Notes: generated by a model not told the origin, from the letters alone. 64,000 bases of DNA from Pelomyxa schiedti (GCA_020536535.1 JAHLWZ010000792.1:62001-126000); one strand, 5' to 3'. Positions 3,885 to 11,186 are shown, counted from the first letter of the stretch. Program-made: numbers and translations.

Positions 3885-6666
3885 ATGGGAGACCCGTATG
3901 GTGTGGCTTCGATGCACAACATCAACAACAACAGGGCAATGGTGCCAATGGGCGAGGGCGGCTACGGCCAACTTGGTGGCACTGGGCTGCCACAACAACA
4001 ACACCAACGCAACGATGACGACGTGAAACGCGACGTCCAGGAACTTGTGAAGGAGTTTCCCGATATGGGTCAATCTCTAATTATGGACATGAGACGGGAA
4101 CAACCCTCGATGCCTGTACTAAAATGTACTACTGTTTTATAGTTATTCCATACAACAGCTAGGGATTGGAACTCTAACATCATCTTCTTCTCAAATTGGT
4201 TTTTTTTTTTTCTCCCCTGTATAGCCGAACTGTTGGCAATGCGTAGACCTCAAAATCCAATTTCATCCCATGACCCTAAAGTGGATTCATTTGCCCCACA
4301 ACACCTACTCAATGCAGGTACTTTTTCAACCTTGTGAATAATGCATCCTAAGTAAAACAAAGTTTCACCCAGAGACATTCCACCAACTCCCTACATACAA
4401 CAGGCCCCGCGCTCCAACTCTCCAAGAGCACTATCTCCCCCTGTTGCTTCTCCTCCAGCACACACCCTCGCAGCAACTACCCTTCCACCACGTAGTGTAT
4501 CTCCAAGTAATGCAGTGGTTTCGTTTCCTCCAGCATTCCACCCCAGTCAAAGTTACCAATCCCCGCAAAACCTCCAGCTACCTACTTGTATAAATTATGT
4601 TCCATCTAGACCACATCCAAAACACCCGAAACCAACCCCAGTAACTACACCAAACATCATGCCTCAACCAAGGGTCATACCAACAAATTGTACTTCAACC
4701 TCACCCTTATTGAGCCCCCCAACGTCAATTCCCCCCGCACCCTCTCAAAACATGTCCGTCACACCCTATATTCAACCAGCCATAACATTTCCCCCCGTCA
4801 CTAACCCTACTCCACCCCGTAATTACCCCAGTGCAAGTAATGCCCCGGCTGTACAACCACATGTGGCACCAACAGTCACCAGCCCAACGGCATCTTTTCA
4901 TGAAACAAGACCACCTTCCAAGCCAGAGGTGTCTGGAATAGCATCCCTCCCAAATTTGAGCTCTTTTCCAGAGTTTCACAAAGTCAGACCCGCTATCCTG
5001 TCACCTCCTCAACCTCGAGAAAACCAGCCCAACAATCATCAGCCTGCATCTGTGCAAGTGAATCAATATACACAGCGGTCTCCGACTCCACCCAAGTCCC
5101 CACAGCCCTTGAGGAATCCTTCTGAAAATACACCAAGTTTGCACTACCCAAGCCATACTCCAAATCCAATTGTACCAGGAGCGCCGAAACTCCTTCTTGG
5201 AGGTAGCTCACAATACCACATGTTCACAGAACCCATCAATGCACCTACACAACCACCGATATGCTCACCACGTCATGAGACCAATACAACGAATCAACTT
5301 CCATGTGAAACAGCACTTACCAAATCCACGTTTTCGCTAGGAAGCTGTTGCACTCACTTGCGTCTCCCCAGTGAGTTCAAGAGGACTACCACCCTCACAG
5401 TACAGCAGGCTACGCGTCTACGGTCTTTAATATCCTCAACTACCTTGGAAGTCTCTGTTGTTGTTATTGATAATGGGTCTTCCACAATCAAATTTGGTTA
5501 TGCCGGCCATGATCAACCTGCTGGGCAATTCTCAAGTTTAACTTCCCGTTCTGATAAGCTCAACAGTAACTTTCATAAATCGCTTAAATGACTTTTCTTA
5601 GCTCATTCAGGTTTGCCAATGCCAACACTTGACAGAGGCAGAATCAGTGACTGGGGTAGCATGAACAAGCTCTGGACATCTACCTTCTCCGCTTTGCATA
5701 CTGAACCAAGCAAAAACCTACTGTTATTGACTGATATGCCCCTCGGCAAGGAACGAGAGCAAATTGCAACTGAGTGGTTTGAAACACATAGCATTGCTGG
5801 CTTGTACATTGCGTCACAGGGAGTATTGTCATTATTATGTAGTGGACGTCCCACGGGTCTAGCTGTGGAAAGTGGCTATGGGGCCACATACTTCGTTCCA
5901 GTTTACGATGGTATGAGGTGATTTCTTTTTGCACAAAACGCAAACAATCTCTTCAAGGAATGATGCTCAGGCATGGTGTGAAAAGACTCGAAGTAGGTGG
6001 AAAAGACCTGACAGACTATTTCCAGAGGCTTCTTACCCAAAGAACACGCATAGACCGGACTTCGGAAAATTACTGTGCAATAAACAAGGCAAAAGAAGAG
6101 CTTTGTTCAGTGTCCCGGAGCAAAGAAGATATTGAGTTCTCAGAGGAAACTTTTTTACTGCCTGATGGAAAAGTTGTCCCTCTTGGACCTTCCAAACACA
6201 AGGTGACAGAGGCACTTTTTACACCGAGCCTACTGGAATCTTTCAATGTATTTGGGCTCCATCAACATATTCAATTCTCTATCAGGGACTGTGACCCAGA
6301 GCTTGGTATCAACCCGCCATTAACAATCTCCCAACACGTAAAAAAGAAGCGGACCTATACCAGAATATTGTACTTGGTGGTGGGAATTGTATGTTCCGGA
6401 ACCTGGATACGAGACTAACATCAGAGTTGTCTAAACTGACGCCAGCTCCCAAAGTTTCACCAAGAGTTACTTTTGACCAGTCCAAGTGCAAAATTTCTAC
6501 ATGGCTAGGTATTTCAGCACTAGGAAATAATCTTAAGCCATTCCCTTCCTAACTCACGATACTAGGGGCTTCAATACTTGGTTCCATGGGCGACTTCCTT
6601 GACAAGGTTATACTAAAACAAGACTATGACGAGAAAGGTGGAGCTGTGGCACACAAATTCTTCTGA
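3885..6666 (+). CDS. Divergent actin-related protein with long N-terminal CUE-like and Pro-rich extension
   Basis: Actin motifs VVIDNGSSTIKFGYAG, RISDWGSMNKLW, VESGYGATYFVPVYDG, GGKDLTDY, FLLPDG, NIVLGGGNCMF, STWLGASILGS, DYDEKG. N-terminal DVQELVKEFPDMGQSLIMDM joins through GT-AG introns. Confidence 0.85.
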
Positions 6667-6744: not shown

Positions 6745-9700
6745 TCATGATAATAGCTCAGGAACTTTGGTGTAGAATCTTTGCATCTCAGGTGGTATTG
6801 CCTAGGGTAGAATAAACCATTATTCTTGGGCAATTGTTTTTTTGTTTTTGTTGTAAAAAGACATTTGAGCATACCATGGAAACCACAAAGTAGGGAATAC
6901 TGCCAGCAAGCTCACTGTGCACAACATAGTGTACTCTCGTGTGCCCTGGTTTATCAGGAATTGTTTCCAACAGGAACCCACTTGGATATATTGTGCCTCG
7001 TGTGAAGCTTGGGCACGGTGGGCATCGTGGATCCTCAACACTAATGTAACAGAACCATATTCCAACTCCTTCCTCTTCCACCCAAGTTTGTACTTCAGCA
7101 AAGTCTCTGTAGAACAAACAGGCAATATATGGTAAGAATTAGGATATATACACAAGAGGGCAAGGATCGTGTGGGGTTTTTTGTTGTTAATGAAAGAAGC
7201 ATATGATACCTTGCGCTTATCCTACCACCCAAAGCTCCGTTTTGCCTTTCAACATAAAGCTTGAAAGTTCCAGTATGCAACACTACTGTAGTCCCACCAT
7301 AACTTGGATTCCATTCTGTTCGCCTTGCATTGTCCAACAATATCTAGTGACACAAATAAAAACCAAAGCATACAAACAACACTAGCCACAGTTCCCAGAC
7401 AAAATGAATGGCATCCACTACAAACAAGTTCTATGATTTATAAATAACTCTGAGATGCCAACAACCAAAACCCGTTGAAATAGCTTTCAAAAAAAAAAAA
7501 AGTAAGTCGCACGCACTTTATTTAGAATGTCATGCGGGCAAGCAGGCAAAACTCCTACGGCCTTGAAGCACGGCGCAGAGTGCCCCTTCACGTAGGTCCT
7601 CTTCACCTTGGCCGCGTCGGTCGATGACACGTCGGACCACGACTCGGGCCCACTCTCGCGGACCAGCCCCTTGAGCTTGACAAGTGCTTCCCCAAGTGGG
7701 CTGTTGTACTTGGCCAACGCCTCTTGGGCTTCGTTGCCCGCCATTTCGTGTTGGTGGATCGATTTGTCGACCGTAAAAACGAAGCAGTCACTTTGATCAA
7801 AATGCTGTGAGTGAGTGGAGGCTCCACTCGTCCCACAAGAAAATGTATTTCCCTGTTGTTTGGTTTTTTTTATACAGTCTTTGTCCACGGGGCACTAATC
7901 TTGAGGTCGTACTTGCCACTGTTGCCAGAGAAGAACCGGAATTCGTATTCACCAATGGGTAGCTAGTTTCAGGTTTAGTGGCAAGTAAGAATGTGGAGGG
8001 ACGGCTAACCAATCTCCCATTGACCATCCGGGTATTGAATCGCACTGTGCCGCACTCGTGAGTTGGGTTGCTCCTGGCACAATACTCGTAGTACAAGTAC
8101 TGCTTGTTATCGGCACCTACCTCAAAAAGGCCTATCCAGTCACTGGTCGAAGGCTCAAGCTCATGGTACACCCATTTAACATCAACAACAGAGCAGTCCA
8201 CACTATTTCTTGTTGTTAGGTGTAAAAAGAGTAACTAAGGTACAGACTTTGGAGTGATAATAAGCGTGTCAGACTTGGGTATTGTGAGAGGTTCGCTAAA
8301 TCCACTGAAAGCTACACCTGAATTTGCTTTAAAGTAACGCAGTTCATATCTCTTCATGGTGTCTCGAGGAGCTGGGAACACAAGGGGGCAACTTCTGCAG
8401 AGTTGTTTTTGTTTATACTGCCTATTGCTCATTTGACCCTACGTGGCAAGATAAGCTCCAGGAAAAGGTGGTGTGAAATACCAATTCGTAAAGTCCTATC
8501 CAATCATTGGGAGAAGTAGCAACAGGTGCAATGGGGTTCTGCCAAGTAGCTATAATACATTGTCCCGTTTCGTCGTCTTTCACCTGAACGGTCAGAGGGA
8601 CTGGTGACCCCACTAATACGGCATTCGACTTGGCTATCCTTGTACCATCCGCATTGAAGTAGCGGATATCATAATAACCATCCTGGGAAAAATGCTGAAT
8701 AGGAAATTTGAGAACGAAAATTTGTACAGGTAAGTTTAGGAAACAATATTCTCCATGCACTAATCCGTCTATGGAAACCGGAGTGAGTACTTCCTTATTT
8801 ATTTTTAAATGTACTTGTGGCAGAAGAAGCTGTGCGAGATTTTTCTCTGTTATGTATAAATAAATCAATCCAATCTTTCTTGCAGGGGGCGTAGGTGGCA
8901 GTACATGTCCAAGTACATTTAACAGTACTTCCTTCAGCCTATGATAAAATAAGCTCCGGGTTGGAGTTGACTGGAGCACGTACTGTAACATTAAGTACTA
9001 CTTCGGGTTCCCCTGAAACTGGAGTGAATGAAGATATATTAAGCCTCAGCATTGTATCAGCAATATTGACTGGCGTAGTAGTTACAGGGGTGACATTCTC
9101 CGCCTGAACTGTAGTTGTTGCTGGAGGCTCCGTGGGAACAATTGGAGGTTGCCCACTTTGTGTTCTTGTATTGGACTCGATGACTTTGCGATAAGCCACA
9201 AAATTAGGCCTGCAACTCCGATTAAACAAACAAGGAAAGAACTGAACTGTTAGAACCCTGGAGAAATGACATCAATTTTCGCACAGTCTGATTCCTCTTC
9301 AGATCTGGGCAGTTATAAAAAATAGGAAATGCGTATCATAAATTTGGTACCCCTTATCCACTTCTTTCATTTTTGTTTTAAGCCTTTCTAATTCTTCCCG
9401 TAGGGTTGCTTCCTGCTCCCTGTAGTCTGCTATTTGCCTTTGAATATCACTGGGAGATTCAGTTCTAATATCGTTAGAGGGTCACAAGAAAGTGACAGGG
9501 GTTTTACGGTGGTGAAAGATGAATCTCGGTGGGAGGCTCTTCGTGATGTGGGACTAATTCAATACCCGGAATGGGAGCAAAAGGTAGTGGCGTTGGTTCC
9601 AGTTTGAGGAGTTGAGGTGGGTCCAGAACTACAGTCTGCTGAGTTACTGTTGTTTGGATTGGTGGTGTAACCTGCAGGGAGTTAGTGTTGACGACTCAGC

Positions 9701-11186
9701 AATTAGAAAACCGCACAAATTTTTGTATTTCTTGTATTTGTGACTTCTGGATTGTAACCTGCTTCACCAGCAAATCTCTACATTTAAGATGTTACAATAA
9801 TCCCAACAATGGAAGTGGACTACCTCACTTCTTTCAGGTTATCCAAGTTAACGTACTGTGGGTCACTTTTAGGTACGGTGGGAGGCAACAGGAAAGACGG
9901 AACTGCCACAGGTTCAAACATCTGTTCTGGTTGCTCTGAGGCAGGAGGAAGTTGGGGATCGGGTTGAGTTTGCACCTGTGGTTGGGGCTGGTATTGAATC
10001 TGCGCTGGTTGATGGTAATTGGTTTGAGTGGATGGAATTTGCGGTACTACGTTGCTTTGAGGCGGAATTGGCGTTAGAGTGGGTTGGGGGGTGGGCATAA
10101 AAGTTGGTTGGGTGCTGGTAGGTGGCTGTGGCACTGGGGGGCGAACGACAGGTGTTATTTGGGGTGCCTGAGGTGTTGGCAAAACCAACTGTGGTTGGCG
10201 CTGAGGAGGTTGCGACTGTGGTTGGGCCTGTATCTGGGGATGTGGCTGCGGGTGTGTCGGTGTCTGCTGTGGCTGTGGTGTTACTGGCTGTGGCTGGGGT
10301 AGTGGTGTCGGTTGTGGTTGCACTTGTTGAGGTTGCGCCGGTATTGGTGGCTTTGTAGTAGGCGGAACATGTATTTGGGAAGGTGATGGCTTTGGTACCA
10401 CTGTAGGTTGTGGTAGCGGTTTTGGGATGGGTTGTGGCTGTGGTTGTGGCTGAGGTTGCGGTTGGGGTTTTGTAGTTGGTACTATTGGTAATACCTGTGG
10501 CTGTGGGATTGGTTGTGGTTTTGGTGTTGGTGTTGGTGTTGGTGTTGGTGTTGGTGTTGGTGTTGGTGTTGGTGTTGGTGTTGGTGTTGCTTGTGGTTGC
10601 AATTGTGGTTTGGGAGGCAGTGGTTGTGGTAATACTTGGGGTGGTACTTGTGGCTGAGGTAATACTTGGGGAGGTGGCTTTGGTAGGACCTGTGGAGTAG
10701 TTTGTGGTTGAGTTTGGCGAGGGGGTTGTGCAATTGGAGGTGGGCTAGCCCCGGGGAGTGAGGACTGAGCAAGGAGCATGTCCATTGCTTGGTCCATATT
10801 TCCACCGCATCTTCTAAGAGCTTCCACAATCATCCAGCGTGGGTTAGAACAGAACTCCTGTAACTTGGCCACCTTAGGCAGGTTGGTATTAACATTGTGG
10901 AGAGAGTTATTCCATCACTTTATCATCATCAGACAACTCATTCAATTTTCGTGCTTCCTCAACAGGGTCGCTAAAATTGGCCACGGTGGCTACGCATAGA
11001 GAATCAACAACCACAAAAACAACAAGTAATAGCAGCCAAAAACAAAAAAAAAGGGGGAGAAGTACCGTCGTAATTGTTTTTGTTGGCGACAAGGGCATCA
11101 TGTAAAATCGACTGAGAGATGTCCGGAAACTGTCGACGCAAGAGTTGCAAGTTCTGCTGTGTCGTGTTCGGTACTGGTTGTGTCAT
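6745..11186 (-). CDS. CUE + UBA/CUE + Pro/Gln/Thr linker + coiled coil + three SKICH-like domains + C-terminal START domain
   Basis: CUE: LQLLRRQFPDISQSILHDALVANKNNYDATVANF. UBA-like: EALRRCGGNMDQAMDMLL. Three repeats of DWI(G/D)L(F/Y)...Y(D/E)(I/L/F)R(Y/F). START: FKAVGVLPACPHDIL, RRTEWN, ISARDF, RGTIYPSGF, TRVHYVVHSELAGSIP. Frame traced through the introns. Confidence 0.8.
10521..10589. repeat. (GGTGTT)n coding microsatellite (Thr-Pro repeat on minus strand)
   Basis: Perfect hexamer run inside the PQ-rich exon. Confidence 0.95.

Follow-up and report, generated by a model that had tools for sequence, protein, structure and literature searches.

The window analysed here is a stretch of 64,000 nucleotides (nt) from the amoebozoan Pelomyxa schiedti (GCA_020536535.1, JAHLWZ010000792.1:62001-126000; contig C792). 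Between positions 6745 and 11186 its minus strand very probably carries two adjacent P. schiedti genes in the same orientation: gene A, predicted to encode a protein with a CUE domain and three SKICH domains, and gene B, predicted to encode a START-only protein. The original prediction, made from the sequence of the window by itself, had seen here a single ubiquitin-binding protein that ends in a START lipid-transfer domain. Its inventory of parts was correct: judged by Pfam and translation, the minus strand contains CUE, UBA-like domain, PQ/TP linker, coiled coil, three SKICH domains and START, in that order, and the outer coordinates are exact (ATG at 11186, stop at 6747-6745). What could not be confirmed is the claim that these parts lie in one traceable reading frame, for a TAA at 7872-7870 follows SKICH3 and the START domain can be joined to the rest only through an unsupported 71-nt intron at 7875-7805. 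The two genes are most likely mere neighbours, and the protein that bears the SKICH domains does not end in START. The layout of the locus is as follows.

7870..11186, minus strand: gene A, 14 exons, 898 amino acids (aa), with CUE, UBA-like domain, PQ/TP linker, coiled coils and triple SKICH
11186-11066, 10989-10919, 10872-9824, 9777-9717, 9671-9508, 9464-9351 and 9304-9257, minus strand: exons 1-7 of gene A
9209-8984, 8938-8815, 8768-8728, 8682-8482, 8438-8248, 8202-8010 and 7962-7870, minus strand: exons 8-14 of gene A
7870..7872, minus strand: TAA stop codon of gene A, directly after SKICH3; the protein ends in ...TKTV
7745..7869, minus strand: spacer from the gene A stop to the gene B ATG, 125 nt, GC content 0.43, holding most of the hypothetical intron 7875-7805
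6745..7744, minus strand: gene B, 216 aa, four exons (7744-7517, 7343-7210, 7106-6875 and 6801-6745)

Minus-strand pieces free of stops, from 11186 to 6745, were translated and scanned against Pfam. Exons were joined by their coordinates in order to check the reading frame, to run tblastn and blastp locally against the paralogue and START loci of this genome, and to make the alignment to the paralogue P0155 described below. The domain scores of gene A were taken on single exon pieces, and tests on contiguous sequence were run on paralogues from the databases. The P. schiedti genome amounts to 52.4 Mb in 5337 scaffolds; it has 19,876 predicted proteins, and its genes contain 7.43 introns on average (PMC8887013).

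The end of gene A is supported by comparison with its relatives. At the homologous position, the closest paralogue (contig C632) shows an identical TKTV-TAA ending, both in the DNA and in the GenBank protein (KAH3760142.1, here P0155, 655 aa), and gene A aligns colinearly with this protein over the whole length between the initial Met and the closing TKTV. All 26 of the eukaryotic relatives that we examined end within about 5-25 residues of their last SKICH domain, and Pfam detected a START domain in none of these 26. Nor were the START exons of the window matched by any of the best 150 of the 564 hits obtained with a SKICH profile of the family (see below). At the level of the genome, a six-frame Pfam search yielded seven START loci as against five SKICH loci, and the only contig that they have in common is C792, the one studied here; the six other START loci lie on contigs without SKICH hits. 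The two START paralogues most similar to that of the window (on contigs C890 and C885) are stand-alone genes whose Met is situated a few residues ahead of the first START helix.

On the side of gene B, Pfam recognises START (PF01852) on the single exon piece 7138-6791 with an E-value of 2.8e-11. When the START-side reference was used in a word search, a single protein came back, the GenBank entry named "START domain [Pelomyxa schiedti]" (P0151), which is 100% identical over its part of exon 12. This 216-aa protein scores 81 bits on Pfam START (cut-off 22, E 1e-22) and matches no other family; the domain that had been expected at the end of the SKICH protein is genuine and belongs to gene B. 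Translation of the four exons of gene B likewise gives 216 aa with the same termini as P0151, which begins at the Met encoded by 7744-7742. The best matches in the PDB are STARD5 (E 8.7e-13), STARD6 and STARD4. Gene B resembles these three in being one START domain of about 216 aa without any further domain, and differs from them by its low identity and in that P. schiedti has two or more similar paralogues of it that also stand alone (the C890 and C885 loci mentioned above). Judged by these matches, gene B encodes a soluble protein of the ordinary START-only kind (STARD4/5/6 type) that is already in GenBank, presumably a sterol or lipid carrier. By the family comparisons, then, each part of the locus appears to keep its ancestral boundary, the CUE-triple-SKICH gene its stop and the START-only gene its start, 125 nt apart.

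In the model of gene A, the joined frame is open with one terminal stop, and all 13 introns have GT-AG borders. Twelve of the 13 measure 43-47 nt, the remaining one being intron 1 (11065-10990, 76 nt), and the exons include micro-exons of 41, 48 and 61 nt. Two micro-exons (9777-9717 and 9304-9257), each lying between two introns of about 45 nt, are concealed in what look like longer introns (141 and 157 nt). Both of these micro-exons, as well as a 45-nt in-frame intron (8727-8683), were recognised through the alignment to P0155. A division of the gene between 9300 and 9800, which the original prediction had named as the place where two transcripts might part, is rejected, since the two micro-exons conserved in P0155 bridge this region and the paralogue protein is continuous there; the actual split is at 7870/7744.

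It must be conceded that the arrangement of the two coding regions is not without ambiguity. The spacer between them is just 125 nt on the same strand, a GT-AG pair in compatible phase with a pyrimidine-rich acceptor yields an open joined frame of 1110 aa, and the GenBank protein models are automatic predictions, which in P. schiedti can be poor, for instance in the names given to proteins. These points weigh against two genes and would favour a single one, in which the 71-nt intron 7875-7805 removes the stop and the main product is a 1133-aa CUE-UBA-triple-SKICH-START protein that combines ubiquitin recognition with lipid transfer. Yet the stop that would have to be skipped is the one conserved in the paralogue, START is borne by no relative in any of the species examined, and the START gene is annotated separately, from the very ATG at which coding-like GC content begins. 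The 20 codons that would form the linker of such a fusion (7804-7745, 60 nt) have a GC content of 0.42, which is spacer-like, as against 0.60 in the exon from the ATG at 7744 onwards. The hypothetical intron also lies outside the 43-47-nt mode of gene A, and the introns of gene B (173, 103 and 73 nt) are set apart from that class as well. A Val codon supplies the GT of the hypothetical intron with its first two bases, and the TAA comes next. Because the donors of gene A share little beyond GT(A/G), splice-site strength does not settle whether this intron is used. On balance, we consider a single gene extremely improbable, and the 15-exon, 1110-aa SKICH-START model is rejected in view of the paralogue, annotation and family comparisons.

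A milder variant accepts two genes and supposes an occasional read-through transcript, spliced at 7875/7805, that would give a minor SKICH-START isoform. The very short spacer and the compatible splice signals speak for this, as does the fact that closely spaced tandem genes of other eukaryotes are known to give conjoined transcripts; the family, however, gives no sign of selection for such a product, and we regard the variant as very improbable. A fusion product of either kind, main or minor, is on the whole improbable. The idea of a cargo receptor that also delivers or senses lipid does not survive these results because it requires START in the same protein as SKICH, and the conserved stop, the ends of the family proteins, the GenBank entry P0151, the stand-alone START paralogues and the lack of any other contig with both domains all place START in a separate gene.

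Returning to the two-gene arrangement, it is gene A that deserves further attention. The domains predicted along its protein are the following.

10970..11156, minus strand: CUE domain, aa 11-47, on exons 1-2, split by intron 1
10765..10872, minus strand: second UBA/CUE-like three-helix domain, aa 65-100, about 20 residues beyond the CUE
9850..10764, minus strand: PQ/TP-rich low-complexity linker, aa 101-405 (about 300 aa), from the translation and the P0155 alignment
9304..9849, minus strand: helical/coiled-coil segments, aa 406-434 and 489-527, around 9849-9717 and 9509-9304; includes the 61-nt micro-exon 9777-9717
8608..9022, minus strand: SKICH1, aa 606-698; Pfam E 0.008, 17.1 bits on exon 8938-8815; aligns with the family
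8250..8607, minus strand: SKICH2, aa 699-803; Pfam E 0.23, 12.4 bits on an exon piece; DWIGLY and YELRYF motifs; aligns with the family
7873..8249, minus strand: SKICH3, aa 804-898; Pfam E 4e-6, 27.7 bits (cut-off 23.4); aligns with the family

The identification of the three beta domains as SKICH (PF17751) has been borne out in part on gene A itself and more fully on its relatives. As single exons, only the SKICH3 piece passes the Pfam cut-off of 23.4, with SKICH1 and SKICH2 remaining below it; the full-length paralogues score 46-64 bits, and on full-length relatives the E-values reach 1e-12 to 1e-19. Among PDB sequences, the SKICH3 exon matches only TAX1BP1's SKICH domain, and that weakly, the similarity of gene A to animal SKICH sequences being weak (PDB E-values of 0.03-0.7). 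To this we can add an AlphaFold2 (AF2) model, not of gene A itself but of the triple-SKICH portion of a paralogue (P0005:330-613), which is all beta with a predicted local distance difference test score (pLDDT) of 93.7 and a predicted template-modelling score (pTM) of 0.85. In a rigid-body search of the P0005 model against 48,161 PDB representatives, the FIP200-bound SKICH domain of NDP52 came first (Z 9.6, root-mean-square deviation 3.1, 99 residues) and the N-terminal domain of HECW2 second (Z 9.3). Foldseek, given the whole three-domain model, found tandem FN3 arrays only. Because FN3/Ig matches lie within one Z unit, SKICH and FN3 are not separable by fold alone, and the predicted SKICH assignment rests on the Pfam scores and not on the fold.

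In the N-terminal part of the protein, Pfam CUE (PF02845) on exon 1 alone scores 13.5 bits with an E-value of 0.06 (cut-off 21.1), the domain being split by an intron; P0155, which is 76-85% identical across the CUE region, reaches 25.2 bits against the same cut-off. The FP motif is present in helix 1 of the gene A CUE. Relatives in Pelomyxa, Mastigella, Mastigamoeba and Protostelium have kept the pair formed by the CUE and the UBA-like domain. When the first 100 residues of a paralogue were modelled with AF2 (pLDDT 73), two three-helix units appeared, the second at residues 54-92, and a fold search with this N-terminal model produced a list topped almost wholly by CUE/UBA structures, with weak E-values.

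Between these domains and the SKICH array lie the linker and the coiled coils. The gene A linker is about 250 aa longer than its counterpart in P0155, and this excess identifies it, as far as one paralogue allows us to judge, as a fast-expanding low-complexity tether. At 10500-10590 (minus strand) it contains some 13 Thr-Pro units in unbroken succession, a perfect (Thr-Pro)n run. The coiled-coil segments, which are conserved in the paralogue and give weak Pfam coiled-coil matches (9481-9302), have a proline-rich spacer between them; a Ser/Thr/Pro-rich stretch follows them, before the SKICH array.

Gene A is one of at least five P. schiedti paralogues, since the six-frame Pfam SKICH search of the genome revealed four further loci, on contigs C626, C455, C255 and C632, all with the same colinear cassette of three SKICH domains. 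A family profile was built from the five paralogues, on the exon in which SKICH1 ends and SKICH2 begins; among 1.84 billion representative proteins it obtained 564 hits at E <= 0.001. The best 150 of these 564 include annotated paralogues from P. schiedti (523, 613 and 490 aa), two proteins of Mastigamoeba balamuthi, others of Mastigella eilhardi and Protostelium nocturnum, and many open reading frames (ORFs) from metatranscriptomes. In the 26 eukaryotic family members submitted to Pfam, SKICH was found in every one, HECW_N in 22 and CUE in nine. The plan that emerges from these comparisons begins at the N-terminus with CUE plus UBA-like domain, continues through a disordered linker into a short coiled coil, and ends at the C-terminus in three SKICH domains in tandem.

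Gene A has the same end-to-end architecture as the amoebozoan proteins of this plan (KAH3760142.1, KAH3760234.1 and KAH3764812.1 of P. schiedti; EP00727_P011275 and P012738 of M. balamuthi; those of M. eilhardi and P. nocturnum), and like them it reaches its C-terminus directly after SKICH3. With the P. schiedti paralogues it also has intron positions in common. It differs in size, the others measuring 490-690 aa and gene A 898 aa through its much longer PQ/TP linker. In the literature library searched we found no description of a CUE plus triple-SKICH family; what came up there on SKICH in Amoebozoa or Dictyostelium was limited to unrelated mentions. On the strength of its predicted architecture, gene A is a new, linker-expanded member of an uncharacterised family.

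In GenBank, two of the family members just named, KAH3760142.1 and KAH3764812.1 (contigs C632 and C255), carry the name "DNA-directed primase/polymerase protein"; apart from CUE, SKICH and HECW_N, Pfam recognises nothing in either of the two, and the name looks like a propagated misannotation. On contig C455, a 279-aa single-exon ORF of unknown kind lies downstream of the paralogue (L012:720-1556), and a further ORF there (L012:3643-4238) has an R...STS...E pattern that recalls ADP-ribosyltransferases. In the window, gene B is faced by a convergent actin-like gene on the plus strand, whose last exon (6391-6552) ends 192 nt from the gene B stop at 6745.

SKICH-based ubiquitin adaptors are usually regarded as an animal invention. 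The obvious comparison for gene A is with the CALCOCO receptors (NDP52/CALCOCO2, TAX1BP1 and CALCOCO1), and the analogy with NDP52 and TAX1BP1 drawn by the original prediction, a ubiquitin binder plus a coiled coil plus SKICH, holds by domain content. In both cases one soluble protein combines a SKICH beta-sandwich of the same Pfam family, a coiled coil and a module of ubiquitin-binding type. The SKICH domains of NDP52 and TAX1BP1 recruit FIP200 and NAP1/SINTBAD (PMC9582228). There are differences as well. The order is reversed, with the predicted ubiquitin binder of gene A at the N-terminus and its SKICH domains at the C-terminus; the CALCOCO receptors have one SKICH domain and gene A three; they bind ubiquitin through one or more C-terminal zinc fingers, whereas gene A has CUE/UBA helices and no zinc finger; and their LC3-interacting region (LIR) binds Atg8-family proteins, whereas gene A has only LIR-like pattern matches. 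Gene A is not a member of the CALCOCO family and would be at most a functional analogue.

Two other groups of proteins share the domain. Pfam HECW_N matches the same domains as the SKICH of the gene A family, and the HECW1/2 proteins are E3 ligases that lack CUE and UBA. In addition, a number of bacterial-looking proteins (P0001, P0002, P0004, P0006-P0008 and P0012) have from 3 to 38 tandem copies of a SKICH/HECW_N-like domain with the DWIGL and YE.R.F motifs; these are secreted enzymes (Peptidase_S8, Peptidase_C10 and glucose/sorbosone dehydrogenase, with FlgD_ig/CHU_C tails), again without CUE or UBA. By these matches, the SKICH/HECW_N-like domain is far from animal-specific.

What, then, might gene A do? 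By analogy with known proteins of similar composition, it is most likely a putative ubiquitin-dependent adaptor. The CUE/UBA pair would bind ubiquitin on marked cargo, the coiled coil would render the protein oligomeric, the long flexible linker would act as a tether between the ubiquitin-binding-type domains and the SKICH array, and the array would provide a docking surface for partner proteins, as its counterparts do in NDP52 and TAX1BP1. More specifically, gene A may tentatively be put forward as a candidate selective-autophagy receptor. Extended to the whole family, the proposal is that the CUE, UBA-like, coiled-coil and triple-SKICH proteins are amoebozoan receptors for ubiquitin-dependent selective autophagy or xenophagy, assembled independently of NDP52 and TAX1BP1 from the same blocks in reversed order; this we consider possible but doubtful.

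Several observations weigh against such a function. In the CUE of gene A, helix 3 ends in ..ANF where a di-leucine is usual, and the second domain scores 16.1 bits (E 0.01) on Pfam UBA (PF00627), under the cut-off of 22.4, which makes it "UBA-like" only. The LIR-like motifs at aa 380 and aa 401 are mere pattern matches. FN3/Ig domains trail the NDP52 SKICH by less than one Z unit in the search with the P0005 model, and the SKICH-like domain is common in bacterial secreted proteins, where a role in autophagy is impossible. Finally, the claw domain of ATG11/FIP200 was not detected in a six-frame search of the genome, itself a weak test.

There is a chance not far short of even that gene A is no autophagy adaptor. 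The SKICH array would then be a generic spacer or a binder of glycan, membrane or cytoskeleton, and the CUE/UBA pair would serve in endosomal sorting or endoplasmic-reticulum-associated degradation (ERAD), CUE being typical of endosomal and ERAD factors. SKICH-type domains are also present in the inositol phosphatases SKIP and PIPP. Consistent with a role outside autophagy, the nearest sequence relatives beyond the Amoebozoa are the tandem repeats of bacterial-looking proteases and dehydrogenases, the HECW_N family that matches 22 of the 26 family members is a related domain of a ubiquitin ligase, and the ATG11 claw went undetected. On the other hand, outside the CALCOCO autophagy receptors no protein is known to combine a ubiquitin binder with a coiled coil and SKICH, the P. 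schiedti genome contains ATG8 genes, and the gene A linker does have its two LIR-like motifs.

Had it been true, the fusion of a ubiquitin receptor with a lipid-transfer domain would have represented a cargo receptor of a new kind. The claim of such a fusion most likely stems from reading over the 125-nt gap between two genes, and it carries a practical warning: with introns of about 45 nt, exons down to 41 nt and spacers of about 125-200 nt, the compact gene structure of P. schiedti makes open joined frames easy to obtain, and a fusion reading is so easily produced that it calls for caution. The interest that remains lies in the conserved CUE plus triple-SKICH family itself, which extends across several amoebozoan lineages. 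Should its members prove to be autophagy receptors, they would represent a case in which the same functional logic was assembled independently. Pelomyxa hosts both bacterial and archaeal endosymbionts, and the family proteins might police the vacuoles of these symbionts; as autophagy receptors, they would offer a handle on how amoebae treat ubiquitinated cargo or their symbionts.

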